From Asterias rubens (taxonomy: Eukaryota), in the NCBI RefSeq assembly GCF_902459465.1, contig NW_022985693.1, forward strand, positions 1,178,001 to 1,242,000: 64,000 bases of DNA. The letters run 5' to 3'. Shown here one piece after another: positions 28,501-53,800 of the stretch. The notes beneath the pieces are model-generated. The model was not told the DNA's origin. It did not search any database and worked only from the letters and a program-made list of their open reading frames with translations. Within the stretch, counting starts at the first letter, position 1. The number at the start of each line of letters is the position of its first letter. Both the position numbers and the translations under genes were made by a program.

Positions 28501-31500
28501 AGTTTGATCCAGAACCATTTTACCAAGATTGTGTGTATGATAGTTGTGCTACACATCCACAATTAGATGCCTGCAGCAATATTGCCAGCTATGCTGCTGT
28601 TTGTAAGTCCAATGCCATTGAAGTTGGAACTTGGAGGACTGAGGAATTTTGTTGTAAGTACTTTTAATTTGATTTTAAACTTGAATATTGTTCTACTGTT
28701 GCATTAAAGGCAGTGGACACTGTTGGTAATTACTCAAAATAATTATCATCATAAAACGTTACTTGGTGACGAGTAATGTAAGCTTGGGCGGTTTCTTCGG
28801 TTACCCGGTTCTACCCGGTTCCAAATTGAAAACCGGACCCGCGGTTCCACTCTTCTGTGGAACCGGGTACCCGTTTTTGTCGGTTCTGATTTTAAAAGAC
28901 CGAGTCCCAATTATAAAAGACTCTGTGGAGCTGATCCTGGGACGAACCGGCTCTAGAAATTGAGGCTCGATGTTGAAAGCGGTGACCGCAGATACACTGT
29001 GCAAAGGCTTCAAGCCGACATGAGCATCAACTATCACATGTGGCTGCATTATTATACAACACACAGTGCACAGCCCCCCCCCTCTAATGCATAGGCATCT
29101 ACAACCACCACCTGTATATGCTGAGATATACAGAGTCCAAAGTCCAACCAGACAGCACGTTGTGATTGGCTGCCGATATATCCATATTCGTAAAAGCTTG
29201 TCCCATGCACAAAACACACAGTACTGTATGCATGTACAGGCATGTACACTTGTATGTACAGAGACGGCACACTGCATGCACTACGGACGTACTGCACTAC
29301 GGACGTACTGCACTACGGACGTACTGCACTACGGACGTACTGCACTACGGACAGACTGCTGCTGGCAAAATCAAAGACTTGTTTAAATGCAGGGAGAATA
29401 GGTGCTCGGTGGCACGATGTCTGATTGACTTGGTGGGTACTCTGGTATTAATTTTTCGTTAAAAATAGATCGGCTCCAATTGTGTGTGTTTGTGAGCTCC
29501 GGACCGATGTCTGATTAACTTGGTTATTTTCAGTTAAAATAGATCGGCTTAATTGTATGTGTGTGTGAGCTCGGGACAGGCGGCTTATGTTTTATATTGA
29601 ATTGGAACCGGGTATGTCTCAGAACCGAGCTTTTTTTCACATAGAAGATATTTGTGCTCATAGCCATTGCAAATTTGTCATGTGAACAACTAATACATGT
29701 ATGCAGAATAAACAGGCAATGTTTGCTGTTTTAAATAATTTAAAAATTGCTTGTTATTCCAATTCAACTCTGCGGTGGCCCTATGCCCAAATTATCTTCC
29801 TCATAACATACTCTGAGTTCTAAATGTACATGCCTGTCACGGTCACTGATTAACAGACTGTTATTGACTGTCAGTGATCAAACAAACAGCTTAAACCCAT
29901 TGTCAGAAATTCCCCCAAGCCTGTCTGAGTCCTTTATACCTTTGTTACAATTGAAGCACTGTTGGGAAAAAAATTTTTTTCTCTCTAGGCATTTAGGTAG
30001 CTTAAAATATCTTCACATGTAAATTGACCTGTGGGTCATTCTTTCATAAGTCAAGGCACTATTGGGTTCCTTGATTTTTAACAAAATGGTAGAATATGTT
30101 ATGCTGTTTGTGCACAAACAGAACACATTTGTTATCAATTCAGACTCAACTTCTTTGAATATGAAATGTGGTTCTGTTGGACAGAGAGGGGAAGGTATCC
30201 TGAAAAGGAAAGGGGGTAAAATGGGCAAATGTAACAGACAGTTATGAAAACCTCAGAAAAGTTTGCCTTGCACAATATTAATGAATTTTTCCCAATTTAA
30301 ATGCAACATTTCAAAACTTTGACAGAATAATCTCTCTCTGCTTTCACTAATACATTTCTTAAATGTATCAGAAATCTTTTCTACGTTTGAAAGATTGGCA
30401 ATTTGTTTTTGTTTTGTTGTTAGTTATGTACAACACAGTGCAACATTTGGATTAATTTGTCCATTAACTTAATTTGTCTTTAGCTCTACGCTGCCCTGAA
30501 CATTCTTCCTACAACCCCTGTATGACTGCTTGCCCATTGATGTGTGGTGAACCGGAACAACGACAGGATGATTTTAGGTGTCCATTTCCATGCGTAGAAG
30601 GTTGTGAATGTGATGATGGACATGTACTTGATGGTAACCAGAGATGTGTTCCGGAGAACGGATGTGGATGCGTCAGTCAAGGAGTATACCACAGGGTATG
30701 ATGTTTTTCCCCCTCATTTTTCCCTTCATTAAATTTTTACTTGAATGAGGTCAACTAATGACATCTACCCAGATTATCTGTGAGGGTAGTTTGAATGTTC
30801 TTCTATCAGCCAATTACAGGTCATCCTTTGTCCTTGATGAGGGTGCAGTTTGCTTGTGTGATGTCTTTCAGACTATTGTGTTTGATTTTGTAATGTGCTT
30901 TGTTTTGTGTGTCTGTGTGTGCTCAGGTAGGTATACACATTCAGCAGTCTAGCTAGGCATACAAGTGTGCCAGGCTGACTCGCTATTGACAAATTCTGAC
31001 ACTCTATTTTATTTTCCCGATATGCTATTGATACCTCATAATAATCATGAATGTTTTTCTTTGTATAATTTGCAATAAGAACTTCTCGTGTTTTTTTCTT
31101 GTATGAAAAAATGGTTAAGGAAAATAGTTTACTGTCCTCGACGAGCGGGAACGTGACAAATTTCAGTCTTTTACAGTTTTTTGAATCCTCAATTAGTAAA
31201 TTTTTCATTTGCCCAATCCCAGTTTATTTTACTCACTTTATTTAAAATAAAATACATTAATTGGTTTAAACATGAATATTTTAAAGATTTCTTTTCTTTC
31301 CTACAGGCCTCTGAGTTTTTCTATACTACTGACTGCGCCTTTGAATGTGAATGTTTAAGCAATACAGCAACGTGTGTGAGCTCATCCTGTCATGCTGAAA
31401 GTTTCTGTGGTGTAGCAGATAACCATTATGGATGTCATTGTAATGTTGGATACATAGGTGATGGCAAAGACTGTACAGGTGAGTAGGGAATGTGGGTTGA

Positions 31501-34500
31501 ATCCAGGAGAAAACATTGAAAAAAACTTACTTGTGAAAAGGGAGAGCACACTTGTTTTTTTGCTGTGGGGAATGTTTCACATTTCACATTTATTGTTTTA
31601 AGTTAACTGGAAAAGACTGATTTGAAATGATTTTACCCTCAGTTGATCCATGTGCCTCAAGTCCTTGTAACCACGGGCTATGTGTTTTAGATGAATCACA
31701 CTCTGGTGGATTTTACTGTCGATGCTTGAGAGGGACTCAGGGAAGATTCTGTGATGAAGGTAAATACACATTATGGCTACGCCTTAAAGGTATTGGACAC
31801 TATCGGTAATTACTCAAAGTACCTGTTAGCATAAAACTTACCGTACTTGGTAACAAGCAATCGAGAGTTGTTGACAGTACAAAACTATACGAGAAATGGC
31901 TCCTTCTGAAGTACTGTAGTTTTCGAGAAAGAAGTAACTTTCCATGATTTTGATTTCGAGACCTCAGAATTAGATTTTGAGGTCCTGAAATCAAGCATCT
32001 AAAACCACACAACTTTGTGTGAGAAGTGTTTTTTCCTTCCATTATTATACCGCAACCTCAATGACCAATGGAGTTCAAATTTTCACTGGTTTGTTATTTT
32101 ATGCATATGCTGAGATACACCAAATTGGAAGACTGGTCTTTGACAATTACCAAAGGTGTCCAGTGCCTTTAAGAAAAAATAGTCTGAATTTTTACTGACT
32201 TGCTATTTACCATTGATAGTTTTTAACTGACTTATATAAATTGCTTTTTACCATTGATAGTATTTGACTGATTTAATGATTTTAACTATTGATAGTTTTT
32301 GACTAACTTTTTGCTATTTAACAGTGACAGTTTTTGACTGACTTGTTGCTTTTTACAATTGATAGTTTTTGACTGACCTATTGCTTTTTTAATTGATAGT
32401 TTTTAACTGAGTTATTGCTATTTACCACTGATAGTTTTTGACTGACCTATTGAGCAATTAGCAATGGAGATGACACTTAGAAGTTATAGCATATAACATA
32501 TGAAACCAATTTATTTTATGTTAAATTTCCAATGGGGATAAAGAGTATTAATTTTGGATTTTACCCATAAACCGATTTGTGCAAGCACTGTATACTCAGC
32601 ACTTTTCCGAGTCCTGTGAAAAAATATCACAAGCATATTACTTGATGGGATTTGAACCCATGACCTTTGCAATTCTAGAGATTGCCCGTAAGCTAGAGGC
32701 AGTTTGAATCCCATGTTTTAGCAGCAGGTACCGCAACATCATACTAGATGTTAAATTTGCATCTGGGATAAAGAATATGCACAGAGTTATTCTCTTCATT
32801 TAAGATTTGAATTTTTGTTTGGTAAAAATCATTTTGTAAAAATCAAGTTTGTAATGTTATCATGTTTTACTTATTTTAAGTGGCCATAGTCCTTAGGCTG
32901 TTTATTTTTGTGAATTTTCTAGAACCAGACTATGAGCTTGCTTTATCAGGATATACTTTGGTTGGTGTCAGCTTCATGCTTAGTATTATGTTGGTTTCAT
33001 GTGCATACCAGTCAAACTCAAATTTTAACATTTCTTTCACATTCATGCATTAACCAAGGTATTCACATGCTGGCAGCACCAAAATCTCTTGGTGGAAGAA
33101 ACAATAGTAATACGCACAAAGAAAACATTGATAGTTCCTTGTAAGTGCATACACGTTTTAACATTGAACAAAATGCTTGTTTAGGGCCATTCATTCGCTA
33201 GTTCACGAAACCGGACTTTATATCACATAATAATACGTATATGTACCTCCATGTGACCAGTCTTCGGCCAATCAGAGTGCATACATTCTCCAAGATATTT
33301 GTTAATATAAAAAAAATAAAGTTTAACAAAAACATACAGACATTGTTATCTCTAGTGTCTGTGTGTAGAATCAAGCTTTTCAAGCCATATTTGTAAAGAT
33401 GAGTTTGTGGGTAGCAAAGCAATAACTTGTCTCTTTTTATTTACTGAAATATTTACCAGGGAGAGGCCATTGCTATGCATATGGAGATCCTCATTATGAA
33501 ACCTTTGATGGGAAAAAGTATGATTTCCAAGGCGACTGTAAGTATGTCATGTTGCAACCTTGTGATCCAACTGTTGTAACACCATTCAAAGTCATCGTAG
33601 ATAATGAGATTGTACGAAGAGGTCGAAAGGGTGCATCTTCTACAGCAGCTGTCTATGTATATGTGTATGACTGGGTGAGTTATAAATGAAGATCTTTCTT
33701 ATAATAACAATAATATATGGATTTATAAAGTGCACATTCTAAAATATATACTCATGGCGCTTCGACAACAGATGATATTGATGTACAATTATTAAACATC
33801 AGGAAATTTCATTGCTAAGAAGCTAGACACAGTATGCTTGTGAAAAGAGCAGCGTCTTCGGTTCTGCTTTGAAGGTTTCCAGAGCAACAATGATCCGGAT
33901 GGAGTTTGGTATTCCAAACTTGATATTCCATGCCCACTGCTGATCCTTGCCATTTTATTACTTTCCGTTTAAAAGATAACCAACAGACATAAACTTCCCA
34001 ATTAGACCACTTGTAACTTATGTTACCATATTAATGAATTATATTTGTGGTGTGCATTCAGGTGATTGGCATGAATAGTAAGAGAAAAATTATGGTCAAC
34101 GGTTCAAGTTTACGTCTCCCTTTGACACTCCCAGGTATTACGATTGTGAAACGAGGAAAGAATGTTGTAAGTACCACACTCATATATGTATCTATGGTTC
34201 TTAAAATTCTACTGTCCTTTTCTTAATTATGTTATTGCACTAAATAAGTGTTATTGCAGCATTTTTTTTAAATCAATATCTTGCGTTGTAGACTGGTGTT
34301 TAAATATCTCATGTCATCAGACAATTCATTTAAGCTGTTTATTTTCTTTGTTAATGATAGGTCCTTAGCACAGACTTTGGTCTGGAAGTGAGATGGAATC
34401 GCAAAGCGGGATTAGATGTCTCAGTGCCTCTACTTTACCGCAATAACACCTGTGGGCTTGGAGGTAGCTGGGATGGCAACTCAGATAACGATTTTGAAGA

Positions 34501-37500
34501 TGTAAGTTGATTTTGTGTATGATATTCAAATATGGAAACCCACTCATTGGAGTTTACAATCATAACTGCAGTTTGCTTTACAATATATACTTAAACGACT
34601 TATTTTTTTGCAAAACAGTACGAAAGTGCGGAGATGTTTGGAAACAGATGGAAAATAAATGATGAGGAATGTCCTGGAGAGCCAGAGCCACCTGAACTCA
34701 ACTGTTCATCACTCAGTCTGGTAATCGTCCGGGATTTGTGCCAGGTTTTCTTCTTACGTAAGTTAAAATTCTTAAACACAGTTTGAGTGTGTTTCTATTA
34801 ATTGCAATTAGACCATAGGATGATCGCTAGAATTGTTCAAAACCGTAGCCCCCACTTTTGGACCACGCACATTTTGTACGTAGGTATGAAGTAAAATACA
34901 GAAAATCCATTACTCGCTGTTGCTTGGCGAAAATCCTGCACCAAATCCCGAAAAGAAACAATTACGGCGACATATAGTGATCTAAAAATCCTCGGAAGCC
35001 TGCGATGTGGGTGACGTAATTCGAAGCATTATTGTGTTTCGTTCCCACACTTTACCATTTAACATACAGTGTATTTCTTCAGCCGATTTACAGGCTCATT
35101 CGGCAAAATTATAAGTTATCATACAAGCGCGAGTGGAATACGAACAAAATAGTGCGTCTGCGTCCCACATCCAACTTGGCCGAGCGTGTGATAATAAAAA
35201 ATTAACACACGCACGTCGTTCAACGAAAAACAAATGGCATCGTACTTGATGTTCAATCAATAAAAATCATGGGTTTTTGTTGTAGGCCTTTGCATGTTAA
35301 TCGGACAGAAAAGGGGAAAATTGACATCGTTCACATTAAACACTCGGAAAAGGTTCTTGCACTGCTGTGAACGATTGGTAAATAGTCCCAGTGTAAACAG
35401 ACGTTATCAAAAATAACTGTTTTTGACCTAAAATTTCCCAAAAATTGGTCTGTTCACGAACTGTGCAGTTTTAGAGCTTAGCAACAACCAAATTCGGATT
35501 CAGTACCATTGAAAACCCTTGTGCGGCAAATTTCATGCGGTCCGGAGATGGGGACCACGGAACCCAAAAAATAGGCCCCTTTTCAATACCCATCCCATGG
35601 TCTAAATAGTTCAGCATTTGTTTATGTTTATAAAAAATCAGTGTTTTTTCTAACAAACAAATACATCGGTTCACTGTTGAAATTTCAACCATTTCAATTA
35701 AAAAATAGATAACAATTTCACATTATCAGAACTCAAAATACTCGACTGATATATAGGGAAACTAAGAAGCACCTGTATATTTCTCATTTCTCCACGTTAC
35801 GTAATCTTAAAGGAATTCATGACCTGTTCTTGAAATGAGCTAAGGCTGAACTTTGAACTATTTCACAACCTTTCCTTTCAACCCAGGTGCATTTGAAAGA
35901 TGTACATCACTTGGTCTAGCACAGATCTTCTATGATAGCTGTGTGTATGATCTGTGTGTAACATTTCCTGAGACAACCGACTTGTGTACAACTACTGCAT
36001 TGTATGCAGATTTGTGTCATGAAAATGGTTTTGATGTAGACCTGTGGAGAACCAGACAGTTTTGCCGTGAGTACAACCAGGATAAATATCATCTTCTTCA
36101 AACTTGCCAATAAAAGTGCCAAACAATGGGTCCAAGACAAGCAATGTTTGAGGCTCTAGTACATGTGTGTAGGATGAATTTGTGTTTTTGACAACAAACA
36201 ATAAAACTCCCTTCTCTATAAAAACTTCTGGGGTTGAATTCACAAAGCTAGTCTTAACATAGGACTAGTCTAGGACTCTAAAGGCTAGTCCTAATAACCT
36301 GTCCTAACTCGAGATAAGACTAATTAACTCTTTGTGGTGCTGCAACAGAAAATGATCTGTCTCCCCAGTTGTAATGAAATTTTTACTTCTTGAGGAAAAT
36401 ATTTATTTCCAGATTAAAAGTTGCGGGATTGTTGATAGCTTTAGAAAGTAATCAACATATCTCTTATATTACAGCACTGGAATGTCCTGAACACTCAAGT
36501 TACACTCAGTGTGCCTCAGCCTGCCCAGGGACGTGTTTCCAACCTGAAGATCCAGCTTGCCCTCATATATGTGTTGAAGGTTGTGAATGTGATGATGGCT
36601 TTCTTTACGATGGAGAAGAATGTGTACGGCAAGAAGAATGCGGATGTGAAGGACCTATGTCTTATTTAGAGGTTAGATTAATGATAATATGAATTTAGAC
36701 TTATAACAGCAACTCTTCGGAAACAGATGAAGGCCCATACACAAAACAATAATAAAGGTGTCACAAAAGTTATGTTCCGCACAAGTGAAGAGAAAAATTA
36801 TCAAAAACTTGAATTCCCTTGAGAAGATGTTTAATAAAAGGTGTTGTTTGATGTAGTGTGGCAGGGAACTTGTTCTAAATGGCAGGTAAAGCATCGTTAA
36901 TAGTTGTTGGTAAATCATTTCTACTTGCCATATTTCCTGCCCAACATATAATATGAATAAACTAAAACCAGTATTCAAAAGTTTCTCAAAGACTTTAAGA
37001 TTTTTCAATGGAATTGCCCTTCTCAAAGTGAAAATGGCCTTGCCCTCTCAAAGATGAAATTCTAGGCTTGCACTTCAAGGATGGCTTGAGTACAAACTCA
37101 GTCATTCTACATTATAGATCTAAAGCAACAAAATGAAGAAAAGAGCTGTCACTTTATGAACTACTTGATGAAGTGATCTAGATTGTAGATAATGATTTTG
37201 GTTTATTGTTGGTTGTGCCTTTTGTATTTCAGGATGGTCAGGTTGAAGTATTTTGTGTTCTGCCTCATCTTTCTCCTCTAGGACCCTGCTTCGAATCCCA
37301 CCAGGGGCACTATGTGGATTAGGTTTTCAGTCCCTACCTGACTTTGTGGAATTTCCCTGGAAATAATCTCTTGGGTTTTCCTCCCATCTAAGACTGAACC
37401 TTCCTTCCAATTGTCTTCTCTCCATTGGGTTCTTTGCTAGTGGAGTGATTAAGTTTCGATCCTTGAGAGTCCTTGGCTTCATAACTATAGAACCATTGAA

Positions 37501-38774
37501 ATGAAATTTCTATGTTTTAATTAATGTCTTTATTAATTCTTCTGGATATTATCTTGGCCAGCCTGGGGAAACGTATGTCAGTTTGGACTGTGGACAGCGT
37601 TGTACATGTAATGGACAAAATGAAACAGTCTGTGAGGATGTTTCCTGTGCTGTCAATGCAATATGTGAAGTACAAGATGGAGAGCTTGGCTGTTACTGTA
37701 ATGATGGTTTCTATCAATCTGAAGAGGAATGTCTACGTGAGTAACTCATTTCTTTATCAAATGACACACTTTATCCACTACGTCATACGACAAATATAGC
37801 AACATGTATCCGTATTGTACTCAACAATAACAACTAAAATTTAATCAATAACAACACTTAGTTGACAGAAATATTTTGTATCTCTACTTATTAATTTTGG
37901 TTTTTACCCATACACTGATGTGTGTTAGCACTGTATACTCAGTACTTTCCCGAGTCCTGTGAAAAAATATCACAGACATGTTACTCGGGTGGGATTCGAA
38001 CCCACGACCCTTGCAATTCTAGAGCAGTGTCTTACCAACTAGACTACCGAGGTTGCCCGGCAGCTAGAGGCAGTTCAAATCCTATGTTTTGGCAGCGGGT
38101 ACCGCAACGATATAGTAGATGTTAAATTTGCATCGGGGATAAAGAATATTAGGTTTGGTTTTTACCCATACACCGATGTGTGTTAGCACTGTATACTCAG
38201 TACTTTCCCGAGTCCTGTGAAAAAATATATCACAGGCATGTTACTCGGGTGGGATTCGAACCCACGACCCTTGCAATTCTAGAGCAGTGTCTTACCAACT
38301 AGACTACCGAGGTTGCCCGGCAGCTAGAGGCAGTTCGAATCCTATGTTTTGGCAGCGGGTACCGCAACGATATAATAGATGTTAAATTTGAATCGGGGAT
38401 AAAGAATATTAATTTTTTTATTTTTTTATTTTGGAATCTATAACTCTAGGGTTACCAAAAGGGGGAAATGTCATCATTTCAACACACCCTTGAATTTGTA
38501 TTCAAGTCTCAGACTTGTTTTGTTTGCAATGACTCTCAACCCTGCTTTAATTCATTTGATGTTATTTGATTCAGCGGACCCATGCGATAGTGGTGAAGAG
38601 CATTGCTCAGGGAATGGTAAATGTGTCAGTCATGGTGACGGAACATTCCATTGTGAATGCAACCAAGGCTGGTCTGGTGAAGCATGTGATGATGGTGAGT
38701 ACCTTCAATCAATCAATCAATCAATATTTTGTGTATGAATAAAGTGTTTGCTTTGAAAAGTAAAAAAAAAAAAG

Positions 38775-38845
<71 letters not shown>

Positions 38846-41800
38846 GTCAGTCAAAGAGTGCCAAAATTAAAGGTTTGCTTTAAAGCTCTGAGGCACAGTT
38901 GAGTGGTTAGTAAGGCTGTTGAAACAGATGAGCTGTAAGGATTGTCTTGAATAAGTCAACTGGCACTTCTAATTTGTACAGGAAGATTATTCCACATTTT
39001 GGGGTCATATACTGAGAATGATCTCTCTGCAAAAGTTGAATTGTGAGTTCTTGGCACAACAAAAAGGGAACAAGAGGTAGACGTTTTTGTTGAGATCTTA
39101 ATTGTAGCATGTCTGTGATTTATCCAGGGGCTTGTTTATGGTACACTTTATACGTGAAATGTTAAGTGTCCTTACAATACACACTCTACCACCAACACAC
39201 GGGCAATAATTAATACTGCCAAAAAGCGCAGCAAAATTGATTGTTCCGTGATGACTTTGGGTAAATATTGGTTGATAACCATGAGCTGACACAGATATAC
39301 CGTTTTGTTCTCAGGTATTGGAGTCTGCACTGCATATGGTGATCCACACTACTCGTCGTTCGATAACAAGAAATTTGACTTCCAAGGGAGATGTCGTTAC
39401 ATTCTAGCAGAGAGTGCTAAAAAAAGTACTCTACCTGGTTTCAAGGTCATTGTGAAACATTTCTCTCCTAGTTTCAACTCGAGGGTTACTTTTACTGATG
39501 AAGTAACTGTCCATGTGTCTGGTTTGGTAAGTCAAATATCTCCTTCCTGTTATTCGAACAAAGCTTTGTTTCTATATTTTTCAAATAATGAGTCATTTTG
39601 TACAAAAGAGAAATAATACAGGGAACAGTGTAAAACCAAATACAATTAATTATGAACAAACAATGAGTATGAAGGCTGTTCAGGTAAGCTTGGTCTTGTA
39701 AGGAGGAACTGTGGACAAACATGTACATACCATTGACAATAGAAAACAACTTGGCAGACCAGTGTACAGTTAAGAAAAGACTTGGGCCCAATTTCATTGA
39801 GCTGCTTCTCAGCACTAAAAATAGCTAAGAAACGACAAAATTTTGCTTACCAGAATGACAAGAGTACCAGCCAAAATAATATTTAACACCTTTACTATTT
39901 GTGGCTGGTGTCCTGCTACTTTTTGCTGAAGCAGCTCTATTAAGTTGGGCTCTGAATGCAAGTGAAGCTAAACACTTAAGTCAAGAAGAATCAATGCTAA
40001 AAGGAAAAAGAAGTAATAGTTACTCATGGAAGCTGGGGGTCAGGACTTTTTTTAATACAGCATAGAATACCCCCCAAAATTACTTGTTCATTTCTATTCC
40101 CTTATTGCTTGGTTTATTTGAAATTATTTTAAACCTGTTTTCTACGTAAACTGTTTGTAGCTTTTTTTGCAGAAGATGACAGTTTTATTTTTTTATCTTG
40201 ACTTAACTAATTTATTTCTACTGTTCTTGCTTTATTTGTACATGTAGGTGATTGAGCTCCTTCAAGACAAGGAGGTTCGAGTGAATGGTATGGTTGTCAA
40301 TCCACCTGCTCACCCAGCACCGGAAGTGTCTATCGAGATCTCTGGCAAACGTGTGGTATGTACACAAGATTGGGGCTACCAATTAGTAATGGAATTGTTT
40401 CATTGCAATCAAAAGCCTTTGACCATGTGTTAAGGTAACTGATCAATTGAAAAGGATAGTTTCCACCAACATAAAATATGTCATCTGATTTATATTAAAA
40501 ACAAGTTTTCTTTATAAAATAGTGTAAATTATGATATAATTTTTGCATTTGTGATTACAGATTGTTACAACAAATTTCACTCTAGTTGTAGCATGGGATG
40601 GTGAAAATTCTGTTGGAGTTAGCATATCAGCCATGTACTTCAATCAAACTCAGGGTCTGTGTGGTACATACGATGGAGACCAAACTACTGACTTCAAGAC
40701 ACCAGACGGTGAAATTGTAAGCATGCTTTTTGTCTTCAAGCTGATGTGACTCAAGATAAAATAGATATCTGACAATCCAATAAACAATTAAAATTATTTG
40801 TTATAAGAATAAACTATAAATAATAGTAAACTTGCTAGTACAACCATATAATAATTCTCTTTTGAGGGAGTAATGGCTCTGAATATTTATTACTCAGAGA
40901 ATGCCCAAACGGTTTGTAGCTCAATCTAAAAAAAAAACCTATGATTTTAAAATGTCACAAATATTCCTAAACTAAATATTTGAGGAAGCTCAATTTTGAC
41001 ATATTACAAGTCTTAGATGAAAACTTGGAATGTTGTGGCCGATCAGATAGGAGCACCGGACTCATACTCTGGTGTTTGTGATCAGCACCTTTTGAATCCC
41101 TGTGTGACACTTGTGTTCTTGTGTTCTTAAGCAAGACACTTAACTACGATCGCTTTGTCCTTCAGATGGGACGTAAAGCTGTTGGTCCTGTGTGTTGTAC
41201 TACGCACCTAAAATACCCCAGTGCTTTTGATAAAAAGAGAAGGGGTTGGCTTGGCTGGATATTGCGCCACAGCACCCTGAAAACCATAACTAAACATGGT
41301 TCTATGTAAAAGGAGTGGGTCTCATACTTAAAAAAGTAGCTCCACATACCTTGCAGGAAATACTGAATGTTTAAGCGACACTGAATGATGGATATGAGCA
41401 CTATTTAAGAAACCACTATTATTATTGTAAATACAGGTTGATGGTGAGGGTGAGTTTGGTAACCGCTGGGTTTACGGTGAATGTGACACAATGGAACCTC
41501 CGGGTGGGTATAAGCCATGTGAAGAAGCTACAGAGGCTAATGTAGAAATGGCTGAACATCTCTGTGAAATCATTAGCGATGAGGATGGTAAGTGAAAGGA
41601 ATGGAGCCATCAGATTATTAACAGGGTCCAATTCCATAAAGCTTGTAAGCACAAAAACTTGCTATGCACAGACAAATATTGCTTAACAAAAACTGGTTCC
41701 CAGCCAAAACTACATTAAGTTTATACCGTTGTTTTTGGTTCAAAACCAAAAAATATGGAAGGCTGTCTCAGAAAAACTTGAATGTAAACATCATGAAGAA

Positions 41801-44800: not shown

Positions 44801-47800
44801 GTCTCCTAAATATTATTTTGGATTTTTTTCAACTACTAAATCTATCATCGGATTTTCCTATTTCTAGTTTGTGAACTTAGTGTGGAGTGATTAGGGTGTG
44901 TTTATTTGCATTTAATACAAACTACTTATTTGCAGGTCGTGCTCTGTGCTACGTGTATGGAAGTCTTCACTTCATTACCTTTGATCTACTGGTTTTTGCA
45001 TTTCAAGGGGAATGTCAATACACTCTGGCAAAAACATGCCGTGATGATGTTGAACCAGCCTTTGAGGTCATCCAAGAGAATGTCCGCTTTACTGAAAAGT
45101 CATCGGTCATTAAGGCCATTCATGTCCATATTGGAGACAAGGTACTTGTAACCGGGCCATTTCATATGTTATGGCTCGGGCTATAAAGGCTATAGGTATA
45201 GCGAGGTCATTCATTTATACAGGTATTAGTAATATTAATAATAATAATAATATTAATAATAATAATAACATAATAAAAGACATTTATATGGCGCATAATG
45301 CAGGAGCCTCTATATGAAACACAAAACATAAAACAATGAAAAAAAAATACACTAAAAGCAATTGTTACAAAAGAAAGATTCAAGCAAATGAGTCTTAAAA
45401 ATTACAATGACCGATATTAGTATGTGCCACAGGGGGATTTTCATTTATACAATACCTCAAATTTTCAAACAACCAACATTCAACTCACTGTGAACATTGT
45501 GTTTTGTGTACTTAGACCCTTTGAACTAACTGATAATTATCCCCATTCCTAAAGGTGATAACTCTGGGTCGTGAAAATCAATGTTATGTAGATGGAGAGT
45601 GGATGGCATTGCCAATCACACTGGATGGAGTTCAAGTCAGGTTCAGTGGCTTCAACCTGGTGAGTTGCAAAATGCATTAATGTTGTTACATACAGGGCAT
45701 TATGTGTGTGTAAAATTATTTCACTGTGAGTATGTGCATGAAGATCGTAATGGTAAGTACATGGAGATAGTCGGTCTGCAGCAGGATCTCAAGGTGATGT
45801 GAAATTGCTCTTTGTATTACCCAGGTTCATCCTTTGCATTCTGTTTGTTGCGCATGATTTATTGTATTTGTGGATCTTTAACATGGTGTGGCCATCTTGA
45901 TTTTCAAGTCGATGTAACCAAACTGAGGTAGCTGGAAGGAGAAATAGTCTGGTTCCTTTTTGTACAATGAATGTTAGCACCCATTAATGCTGTTGGATTA
46001 AGGGAAAAATACCAACATGTTGGATGAAGGGAACAATACCAATATTCCGGCAACATGATACAGGTCTATTGACCCTATTCACCTGATGTCATCATCAAAA
46101 TAATCTTGGATGCGCAATTTTGGTGGTCAATGTCAACGTCTGTTATTCAGTGAAGTGCAGCGTTTACATGTAAACCTATTGACCACCAAAATGGTGAGCG
46201 TGGTGCAGTCGCCGCGTGTGACCTGTGTGCAACGGGTCAATAGCTCAGTGCTTCATCATGTTTATTGGGTTAGCAGATTGTCACTAGGATGATTGTGCCT
46301 GAATCTAATGATCATTCTCTTTGTGTTTTACAGGAAGTGAGAACTGATTTTGGTTTGACAGTTACTTACGATGGATTGTATTATGCAGCAGTCTATGTAG
46401 ATCCACATTTCTCTAACAAACTGTGTGGTATGTGTGGCAATTATGATGGAGACCACTCTAATGATGCCGTAAGTAACAAACACGATATTTGGTTTTGGTG
46501 CCTAATCACCAAAAGAAGTGAAACAGCCAAACATGGGATGAGAGAAAAATCAAATGGTCCTCATTTGGATTTGAACCCAAGCCCCTGACACTGGGGGCAG
46601 ATGCTCTACCAACTGATCTATGAGGCACAGCCGTCTACTCCCTCAGGTTTTTCCCAAGTAGTCATGTGGAGATAAAATACAATTTGTTTATTTTGATGTA
46701 TAAAATGCTGTCTAATATTATATCATAGACATCAACAAAGTAGTGCAACAATGCATCAAGTATATAACAACAAGTTAACAAACAATCTGGATCTTCCCAA
46801 AACATTTTTTCCACTTCAAGTTGCTTATTAAACTCCCCCAAATAAATTTCACTGTGAGTATGTGCATGAAGATCGGCATGGTAAGTACATGGAGATAGTC
46901 AGTCTGCAGCAGGATCTCAAGGTGATGTGAAATTGCTCGTTGTATTACCCAGGTTCATTCTTTGCATTCTGTGTGTTGCGCATGATTTATTGTCAACTTA
47001 TCAATGTATCCATGGTATTGCCCCTGTTTATCTTCAAAGCTTAGTTCAGGAGTACAAAGCAACCAGAAATCTGCGATCTTCAAATAAATCCCTTCTGACT
47101 CCCCCAGTCATCAAAACCAAGTCGTACGATTCCCGATCTTTCCAATATGCAGCAGTTCAGTTATGGAACAGTTTTCCAGAGGTTGTCAAACAGGCTGAGA
47201 CATTAGAACAGCGCATAGGGACCTCGCGGTGATATGCGCTACATATGATTATTATTATTATTATTATTGATGGTTTATTAAAATTTAACTTGTAGCCAAT
47301 GGCTAAATTGCGTCAATATATACATGTTATACAGTAAAATATTTTTAAAATAAACATTAGGGAATGCACAACAGACGAACTGCAACATGCGTCATCGACC
47401 GCCATCCTTGATGAATGTGTACGCGTGAAGAGCCATCACTGGCTGAGAGTCGTGCGTAGCACGTACACTTTGAAATCCATTGTTACATCAAAGATGGCGG
47501 CCAACGACGCGCATCGCAATCCGTCTATATATTAAAAAGGAAATGTTTACCCGACCGCAACAACACACAAGAACAAAAAAACAAACATTAAAATACCGGA
47601 GAACTCTACATACAGGCAAGAAATTTAAATAACATTTGAAATCAAAACATTGAGGACTACATGTACATACCTGATGTGAAAAGTGGTAACTTCATGTACT
47701 GTATGCTTAAAACAAGAGACTTTTACAACAACATTTTTTACGTTCACGTTCACGATTTTGCTCGCATTACGTGCAGCTAAGCCTTTCTATTTTCTGCATA

Positions 47801-50800: not shown

Positions 50801-53800
50801 ACTGTGCCTACATGATGCATGTGAATCAAGACTGAACAGACCACTGATGTGTCTGCATCCATTCATATTTGTGACAGCCTGTATATCACTTGGCGGGGAT
50901 GCCCCAATATGGAGGACTATTGACTATTGTCGTACGTAGGATTGATATTTTCTTGCACCGTATATTCAAAAGAGAATTAAGTATAAAGCTTAACCATTAA
51001 TGATCTTTGACAGTTTTTATTGGCAAGCTGCGTTTAGTGAAAATGTTAAATGTTTGTTTTGGGTATGAACAAGCCCAAGTGAGACTGTTATATAAACTTG
51101 CCAGTCATTTTCAGTAACTTTCAGCTAAGTTTTCCAATAATGTTGAAGTATTTGAAAAAAAAAAATATTAAAGTTTTTAGAATAACATTTTTACAGTTTT
51201 TTTTTTTCCAGGTTCAAACATTGACATCTGGATTTTAATTAACCAAATTCAAACTTAAATCTTAAAGTTTTGAAACGATTTGTTTAAACAAAAATCAATC
51301 TCTCTGTCACCGGTTACAGCTGAATGATGCTGAAAACAATGAAAACCGTTAATGGTCATTACTTAAAGGGAAGGTACACGCTTGGTAATTACACAAAACA
51401 AATATTAACTTAAAAAATGACTTGGTAATGCTGTTGATAGTATAAAACATTGACACAAACGGCTCCCTTTGAAGTAGCATAGATTTTGAAATAGAGTTCA
51501 TTTCTCACTAAAATAATAAAAGACTTCTAGCTAGAAGTCTTTTATTCATGTCTGAAAGCACACAAATTCGTCCAACAAGGGTGTTTTTTCTTTCATCATT
51601 TTCTCCCAACTCCGACGACCAATTGAGCTAAAATTTTCACAGGTTTGTTGTTTTATGCATATGTTGAGATACACCAATTGATCAAACGATTGATTTTTCT
51701 GTCAGTTATTGGTTCTACCTGGTTTTGGTTTTTACATACTATATTGAATATTCAATTGTGGGTGTGAAGTTGAAATTTTTAAATAATGATTGAATATGTG
51801 CATTTGTTTTTGAAGCTGTTGATTGTCAACAAGGGTCTAAATTCAATGTGCAGACCTCTGGGTGTCCGCAGACTTGCTCTGAACACAGAAGAGGAATTAC
51901 ACCGCACTGTAACACAAGAAGAGTGGAAGCATGTGAATGTAATGTTGGGCACTTCCTTAGTGGAGGAGAGTGTGTGCCTGCAGAAGAATGTGGGTGTGTC
52001 TATGAAGACACATACTATCAGGTACTTACATTGCATGTTTTCTATCTGTCATATTGTACAAACACCATTGACCCCTCAGATACTCTCATTGTATATCTGT
52101 AACTTCCATATTGTACAAAAACCATTGACCCCTCAGATACTCTCATTGTATATCTGTAACTTCCATATTGTACAAACACCATTGACCCCTCAGACACTCT
52201 CATTGTTCACATGTAACTTCCATATTGTACAAACACCATTGACCCCTCAGACACTCGCATTGTATATCTGTAACTTCCATATTGTACAAACATCATTGAC
52301 CCCTCAGATACTCTCATTGTCCATCTGTAACTTCCATATTGTACAAACATCATTGACCCCTCAGATACTCTCATTGTCCATCTGTAACTTCCATATTGTA
52401 CAAACACCATTGACCCCTCAGATACTCTCATTGTATATCTGTAACTTCCATATTGTACAAACTCCATTGACCCCTCAGATACTGACATTGTCCATCTGTC
52501 TCTTCATATTGTACAAACACCATAGTGCCTCTATGCCCTGTAAGATCATGTCAGAAATGGAGTGATTAGGAAGATTGAAGTGATGACCTACAGGTGTATC
52601 TAGCTTTTGGGTCTTGACTGTAGATCTGTGGCCGTAGAAACGCCTCTTGAGTGTAGTTCTTGTTTCACCTATATATTGAACACCACAGACTCTGCAAGAT
52701 ATGAGATAAATGAGATTAGTGGTGGTGCAGGTGACATGACCCCTTGTTTTATGGGTGGTACTGCCGGTGTTACTGGTGAAGGAGTCCGAATCCCTGATGT
52801 GTTGTCTACAGACGATGCATTTGGAGATGTTGGAACACCTAAAAGTTCCCTGTGGTAGAGGGGGATTAACATCATCATTAATGGGAGGGACTTCTGCTCG
52901 GACAATGAGATCCCTGAGACTTGGTGGGCGTCTGTAGGCAACTATGGGTTCTTCCTGCACAGCACGTTGAAGTCGATCTGATGTGTGAAGAATATGATGG
53001 TTAGAACTGGTTATTTTACGAATGGGAGGAAGTGAGGGGTGGAAAGTGACAACAAAAGGAACTTTCCCCGTAGGACTCTGTTGTTTCTTGGGTCCTTTGG
53101 AAAGTACTGACTCCCTAGAACGAGCCTTGACTTTCTGGATAGCTCGATGGACTGCTAGAGAGCTATGACCCCTGGAAACAAGGTGTTTCTTAAGTTCGTG
53201 TGAGTGGTGGATAAAATCAGAATAATTAGAACAGATTCGACGGAGTCTGAGGGCCTGACTGTAGGCTATGCTGGTTTTGCAGTGTCGGGGGTGACAGCTA
53301 GTGGAATGTAGGTATTGGTGTTTATCTGTGGGTTTAACGAAGAGATCTGTGGTTAAGCCTGCATCCGTCTTGAGAACCTTGACATCCAGAAAGTGTGTAT
53401 CCTTGATTGAGTATTCGCTCGTGAATTTAATGGTCCTGTGGAAGGAATTTATGTGATTAATGAAAGCTTTGAGGCTCTGCTTCATCGCTTGTCCAGATGA
53501 AAAAGATGTCATCGATATAGCGCCACCAGACCCAGGGACGGCAAGAGAAAAAAAAAGAACAGAAAAAAGGGAAAGGATTTGCTCTGTATAGTATTTGCAC
53601 AGTCAAGTTTGACATGATATGTTGCTTTTTCTCATTTATTACAGCAAGGCCATATTTTTGTGAAAGATGACTGCACTCATGTATGCGAATGTAATGATGG
53701 TCGGGTAAAATGTACACAGTTACAGTGTGATGACAATGCTGAATGTGTTGTAGCTGATGGAGTGCGTGCATGTAAATGCAGTGACGGTTTCATTGGAAAT

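Follow-up and report, generated by a model that had tools for sequence, protein, structure and literature searches.

SEA and GAIN domains undergo self-cleavage in a folded β-structure, in which one strand stays embedded in the other fragment. This creates a joint that is non-covalent and sensitive to force. VWD domains with a GDPH motif belong to an unrelated fold and are cut by Asp–Pro cleavage via an anhydride, as opposed to the Ser/Thr N–O acyl shift of SEA and GAIN. In FCGBP, built from repeated VWD-C8-TIL-TILa cassettes of which most have GDPH, all GDPH sites are cleaved and the parts of vWD1 are joined by one disulfide, C472–C611 (Ehrencrona et al., PMC8267560). It is a single disulfide that tethers each fragment of a cleaved VWD (PMC10880436; PMC11796319), and such single tethers have been suggested to serve controlled dissociation (PMC11796319). 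Without the disulfide, cleavage could in principle cost the first strand and fragment the protein; the purpose of GDPH self-cleavage in VWDs is still an open question (PMC10880436). The GDPH-cleaved VWD of MUC4 (sialomucin complex) holds its subunits together non-covalently (PMC6853952), and the large N-terminal extracellular subunit can be shed. Here we describe VWD2, the second of five VWD domains of a long, intron-rich, FCGBP-like gene on the + strand of a 64,000-nucleotide stretch of Asterias rubens DNA (contig NW_022985693.1, positions 1,178,001 to 1,242,000; the whole stretch is referred to as the window). As an earlier note on this DNA had pointed out, VWD2 retains the GDPH motif and the Cys preceding it and carries Gly in place of the tethering Cys.

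VWD2 is encoded by four exons (Table 1), and its spliced translation reads ...CDEGRGHCYAYGDPHYETFDGKKYDFQGDCKYVMLQPCDP...NNTCGLGGSWDGNSDNDFEDYESAEMFGNRWKINDEEC. GHC-YAY-GDPH is located near the start of the domain and TCGLGG at the CGLCG position. Across the exons of cassette 2 the Pfam order is EGF, VWD, C8, TIL, TILa, which places the VWD, with profile scores above the gathering threshold, within a D assembly. The best-matching solved chains by sequence are those of FCGBP (8rde and 8r0t, single-domain E-values down to 4e-30), and the motif context C-x3-GDPHY-x-TFDG...FQG...CGLCG is common to both proteins. The FCGBP alignments put GHC-YAY-GDPH of VWD2 on xxC-xxx-GDPH and its Gly on the second Cys of vCGLCGny. 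The window protein differs from FCGBP in its N-terminal region and in having an EGF domain between cassettes.

The tether positions in VWD2 were assigned by positional homology to FCGBP in combination with the published disulfide. In the reported FCGBP peptide ...AVC(472)RAQGD(477), C472 sits four residues before Gly (PMC8267560), and alignment to 8rde (offset 416; chain Cys 56 and Cys 195) identifies C611 as the second Cys of CGLCG. The premise that the Cys before GDPH is bonded to the second CGLCG Cys, originally drawn from another protein, is thus borne out on FCGBP. All VWDs of FCGBP keep this pair (PMC8267560, PMC10880436), whereas in VWD2 the upstream member (Cys a) faces a Gly codon, GGA, two changes away from TGY. 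Judged by these alignments, the canonical tether is absent from VWD2. The other four VWDs of the window retain the second Cys, in agreement with the earlier note: the N-terminal motif and the CGLCG position read AHC..GDPH and CGLCG in VWD1, GVC..GDPH and QGLCG in VWD3, LC..GSLH and CGMCG in VWD4, and QC..GDPH and CGLCG in VWD5.

Mutagenesis of FCGBP D10 has shown that cleavage requires Asp and His of GDPH, with a contribution from Gln of FQG (PMC10880436). Asp, Pro, His and this Gln are intact in the VWD2 sequence of the window as well as in P0167, the divergent copy treated below, and the VWD2 motif is aligned with GDPH of the FCGBP VWDs, in the turn between β1 and β2. As far as can be read from sequence, VWD2 retains every known determinant of autocatalytic Asp–Pro cleavage. 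A full-text literature search for PHYETFDGK and CYAYGD gave no match.

The exon structure is backed by RNA contigs from two coded organisms. GT..AG joints were found in RNA runs X17 and X19 at 31759/33460, 33674/34062, 34166/34361, 34757/35887, 36066/36475 and 36671/37562; the joint 34501/34619 was taken from pieces of the X19 contig. Run X19 (organism B) provided a 19.2-kb transcript contig in which exon A begins at nucleotide 4406, which fits the roughly 1,450 amino acids predicted to precede the cleavage site. A DNA contig of run X1 (organism A) and the RNA contig of X19 share a sole difference to the window within exon C, the synonymous exchange AAC/AAT at 34480; run X17 shows two differences in this exon. 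As DNA and RNA agree on GGA, a read or assembly error can be dismissed, which had previously been argued from the two-base distance to TGY. The 60-mer 34420-34479 spanning the Gly codon was present in runs of organisms A, B and C and in marine metagenomes; among the runs containing sequence from the window are marine and macroalgae metagenomes.

Table 1 Features of VWD2 and the remainder of cassette 2 (window positions)
Feature	Position	Strand	Evidence or remark
EGF exon directly before VWD2, 6 Cys	31640..31759	+	Pfam EGF E 6.8e-5; RNA joint 31759/33460 in X17 and X19
VWD2 exon A: strand β1, GDPH, Cys b, Cys c	33460..33674	+	Pfam VWD E 1.8e-16, profile positions 1-64; RNA joints
Orphan Cys (Cys a, TGC), four residues before Gly of GDPH	33471..33473	+	Aligned to FCGBP C472; canonical partner missing
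GDPH motif	33483..33494	+	Predicted scissile Asp–Pro bond between 33488 and 33489
Gln of FQG	33528..33530	+	Equivalent of FCGBP Q4094
Cys c, canonical partner of first CGLCG Cys	33561..33563	+
VWD2 exon B	34062..34166	+	RNA joints in X17 and X19
VWD2 exon C with TCGLGG	34361..34501	+	Pfam VWD E 8.6e-9, profile positions 107-150; RNA joints
First Cys of CGLCG position (Cys 1, TGT), kept	34451..34453	+	Canonical partner of Cys c
Gly (GGA) replacing second (tethering) Cys of CGLCG	34460..34462	+	Aligns to that Cys in every FCGBP VWD alignment printed
Exon D: VWD2 end and C8 start	34619..34757	+	X19 contig piece; translation
Last VWD2 Cys, partner of Cys b	34670..34672	+	In exon D
C8 exon, cassette 2	35887..36066	+	Pfam C8 E 1.9e-12; RNA joints
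TIL exon, cassette 2	36475..36671	+	Pfam TIL E 3.6e-14; RNA joints
TILa/E exon, cassette 2	37562..37736	+	Pfam TILa E 4e-9; RNA acceptor joint; gtgagt donor

Close relatives of this protein proved scarce. A phmmer search with exon A against 1.84 billion representatives returned 150 multi-VWD proteins; no full-length orthologue was found, identity to cassette 2 does not exceed 39% in any of these best 150, and the N-terminal region of the window protein is common to none of them. Exon C alone gave no candidate in a 5.8-billion-protein search, and a scan of JGI metagenomes with exon A gave no relative. A mixed alignment query combining a homologue with window exons recovered only two close relatives, i.e. 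a TIL fragment encoded by the window itself and P0167, a 312-amino-acid open reading frame on contig JACSEG010006067.1 of GCA_014845345.1 (locus L001). With P0167 as query, only P0167 was recovered. L001 is collinear with the TIL1-TILa1-EGF-VWD2 part of the window, flanking introns included, and P0167 is 79% identical to the window protein, with a Pfam VWD match of E 9.7e-34. It has GHCYAYGDPHY and TCGLGG, and the Gly codon is likewise GGA, so that the check on Gly conservation proposed with the original observation returned the same codon in X1 DNA, X19 RNA and the divergent L001. Comparison of L001 and window over 191 codons gave a dS of 0.38 and a dN/dS of 0.34 (VWD2 alone: 0.35 and 0.37). 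The 35 nucleotides 33462-33496 around GDPH are identical in L001, and the block RGHCYAYGDPHYETFDGKKYDFQGDCKY is invariant between the window and P0167. With L001 divergent yet carrying GGA, the Cys loss appears to be old, with both lineages keeping the orphan Cys, GDPH and Gly; on this comparison the one-Cys state is old and under purifying selection.

The possibility that L001 represents a paralogue in organism A was rejected, as no L001-like contig was obtained from X1; L001 is a separate lineage. Two further observations on this locus should be recorded. Relative to window 30692-34501, L001 1060-1832 lacks five consecutive introns, from the TIL1 exon through VWD2 exon C, and the introns flanking this intron-free block can still be aligned, with 75-78% identity. 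The pattern resembles a loss of introns as a block, perhaps by way of cDNA, or an assembly that mixes RNA and DNA. In run X5 (organism C) a 237-nucleotide contig of L001 type covers window 33483-33680 and shares 9 of the 11 listed variants, and the same run additionally contains contigs near-identical to the window (0-2 differences each). The X5 sample is either mixed or hybrid, or it holds a second divergent copy.

The VWDs of 227 retrieved homologues were aligned to a hidden Markov model, giving 695 domains from 177 proteins that are complete at both tether sites. Both Cys are present in 676 of these and neither in 17. The upstream Cys stands alone in two domains, window VWD2 and P0167, while none of the 693 others is one-sided; the pattern thus exceeds chance. 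When VWD2 and P0167 are left aside, the association of the two Cys is perfect (Fisher p = 2e-34); repeats inside one protein are not independent, and by our reading the 17 double losses correspond to at least about ten separate events. Elsewhere, then, the tether cysteines are gained or lost strictly as a pair, and the one-sided state is therefore normally transient, though persistent in VWD2. GDPH is retained in 11 of the 17 double-loss domains. The unrelated proteins P0004 (1185-1342), P0012 (1865-2023) and P0084 (646-811) each have one untethered GDPH domain among otherwise tethered VWDs, that of P0084 itself reading CGLGG; further GDPH domains without tether are P0086 3390-3543 and all VWDs of P0038. 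Untethered GDPH domains thus recur in nature. They resemble VWD2 in possessing GDPH and lacking the tether disulfide but differ from it in that both cysteines are lost and no orphan is left. A separate arrangement was observed in P0073 (1174-1339 and 1971-2137), where the motif GHC-x-GDPH-C has Cys flanking the scissile bond and the CGLCG cysteines are missing; these domains may have a different, local tether across the cut.

Cassette 2 of the window offers no replacement for the lost Cys. Its VWD contains 5 Cys compared to 6 in cassette 1, and the counts are the same for C8 (8 each), TIL (11 each) and TILa (9 each), resulting in totals of 33 and 34; the preceding EGF domain has its 6 Cys. Given the odd number in cassette 2, one thiol must be free or bonded outside the cassette, and the orphan Cys most likely remains a free thiol beside the Cys c–Cys 1 disulfide. 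The earlier description of Cys a as a residue without a partner holds insofar as cassette 2 has no extra Cys, though Cys a could displace Cys c at Cys 1.

With the canonical tether gone and the cleavage determinants intact, a non-covalent joint at VWD2, about 1,450 amino acids from the N-terminus, is likely. The VWD2 site would be cut in the secretory pathway, like its tethered counterparts in VWD1, VWD3 and VWD5, and only the VWD2 joint would be without a covalent link, so that the mature protein would be a two-part complex. The N-terminal ~1,450 amino acids (head, EGF/CUB neck, cassette 1, the EGF domain encoded directly before VWD2, and β1 of VWD2) would be held non-covalently, solely through insertion of β1 in the β-sheet of VWD2. 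Such a joint would be stable at rest and would constitute the one place where force or denaturation could part the chain without reduction. It would correspond to the α/β arrangement of MUC4 and, in a looser sense, to SEA and GAIN domains. MUC4 is similar in that the canonical tether is absent. Unlike VWD2, which is flanked by EGF and C8-TIL-TILa, the MUC4 domain lies outside any VWD-C8-TIL assembly, in a NIDO-AMOP-VWD context that VWD2 does not share. VWD2 moreover keeps the orphan Cys upstream of GDPH, which could bond elsewhere. Taken as a whole, the preferred explanation states that VWD2 is a functional, expressed FCGBP-type D assembly (EGF-VWD-C8-TIL-TILa) in a giant multi-cassette extracellular protein, cut at GDPH and left as an untethered, MUC4-like two-part complex. 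We regard the chances of this complete picture being right or wrong as about evenly balanced.

Several points weigh against it. The GDPH site of MUC2 is uncleaved in some expression systems (PMC10880436). Cleavage stabilises FCGBP D10, the cleaved form being more stable and more protease-resistant than uncleaved mutants (PMC10880436), and therefore β1 may never leave. The apparent conservation of the one-Cys state depends on one divergent copy, and a single Cys codon would be kept by chance with a probability of roughly 0.4 at dS 0.36 under neutrality, which is not negligible. The 60-mer spanning the Gly codon was not present in runs of organism D, where the codon is thus unread; Gly is expected there by bracketing with L001, as the more distant L001 has GGA and a Cys in organism D would need an unlikely two-step reversal. 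Lastly, unpaired Cys in secreted proteins frequently acquire a partner; a covalent link would be restored if Cys a replaced Cys c in the bond to Cys 1 or reacted with another molecule. In all other naturally untethered GDPH domains both Cys are lost, and the retention of one in VWD2 could mean that a bond persists.

Two rival explanations were weighed. The VWD2 state may be a tolerated relic, in which a disulfide that can be dispensed with has lost one of its Cys, β1 is held firmly whether or not the domain is cut, and the free Cys lies buried and unreactive, with no functional effect. Besides the favourable stability and protease resistance of cleaved FCGBP D10 (PMC10880436), the free Cys is inert in FCGBP as well (PMC11796319); disulfide loss is tolerated in this protein, given that VWD3 lacks the other VWD disulfide, and a dN/dS of 0.35 indicates only moderate constraint. 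Still, a one-sided state that is found in none of the 693 other VWDs would usually be short-lived, yet this one lasted over a dS of ~0.36, and the invariance of the RGHCYAYGDPHYETFDGKKYDFQGDCKY block also speaks against it. A relic of this kind is conceivable but rather unlikely. According to the second rival, the tether is established by another route, in that the orphan Cys takes the place of Cys c in a bond to Cys 1, pairs with its counterpart in a second molecule or is linked to a small partner; the chain would then be covalently joined or form a disulfide dimer, and there would be no release point. The invariance of the Cys a codon and its neighbours in the divergent copy is in line with this, as is the survey, in which all other lineages losing the second Cys lost Cys a too. 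Cys 1 is three residues from the lost Cys and probably close in space, and odd Cys form intermolecular bonds in VWF, MUC2 and the FCGBP C-terminus (PMC11796319). On the other hand, the odd Cys count of the cassette leaves a free thiol in any intramolecular scheme, and the extra Cys of the FCGBP VWD assemblies are free and make no intermolecular bond (PMC11796319). We consider a tether by another route unlikely.

A more far-reaching proposal regards the half-lost disulfide not as an intermediate on the way to full loss but as a functional device, i.e. a gated, single-use detachable or cross-linking element of an adhesive or mucus protein. The free thiol would then lie five residues from the new C-terminal Asp of the ~1,450-amino-acid head; it could swap into the adjacent Cys c–Cys 1 disulfide to provide a redox-switchable tether or, alternatively, capture a partner or surface thiol after force-induced release. 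Two reactive groups had been invoked for cross-linking in the earlier note, and both are weakened by the FCGBP data: the Asp end is buried and was found hydrolysed (PMC8267560, PMC11796319), which speaks against coupling via the Asp-anhydride, and free Cys of FCGBP VWDs are unpaired without intermolecular bonds (PMC11796319), which speaks against a reactive thiol. We rate the device as quite improbable. An artefact or decay, i.e. an error in sequencing or assembly or pseudogenisation of the cassette, is refuted by the concordance of independent DNA and RNA contigs, the open frame and correct splicing, the identical GGA codon of L001 and a dN/dS below 1, and retains a practically negligible probability.

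Beyond VWD2, the window shows further variation among its VWDs. In VWD3 (39320-39460 and 40561-40698), where GDPH and the tether pair are kept, both cysteines of the other VWD disulfide are missing: the motif has no first Cys (QGLCG), and the partner of that Cys after FQGxC is absent too (RYILAESAKKS). In VWD4 (44938-45138) GSLH stands for GDPH while both tether cysteines are kept (CGMCG at 46424); this domain is predicted not to self-cleave. Very high-copy intronic repeats are located at 31800-32200, 32600-32800, 37000-37400 and 37889-38416 (summed contig word depth ~1e7). Among them is a duplicated 260-bp unit with a tRNA-like end (GGGATTCGAACCC), which looks like a short interspersed element (SINE). 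The TIL4 exon is followed downstream by a minisatellite (57-bp unit, 8.3 copies, 52050-52523) that is apparently intronic; it gives rise to the 259-amino-acid open reading frame 51786-52565, which is probably not a gene.

The idea of an untethered GDPH domain is already known from the literature and from MUC4; what is new is the conserved orphan-Cys state. VWD2 represents a clean natural experiment on tether function, and the four tethered FCGBP-type VWDs together with one untethered domain that still has the partner thiol form an internal control series on the role of the tether. The recurrence of single untethered GDPH domains in several multi-VWD proteins points to a deliberate weak link as a possible general design. 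If the VWD2 joint separates, it would define the way in which the head of a giant extracellular protein is shed or deployed, and the two-subunit logic of MUC4, SEA and GAIN would be extended to D-assembly arrays.

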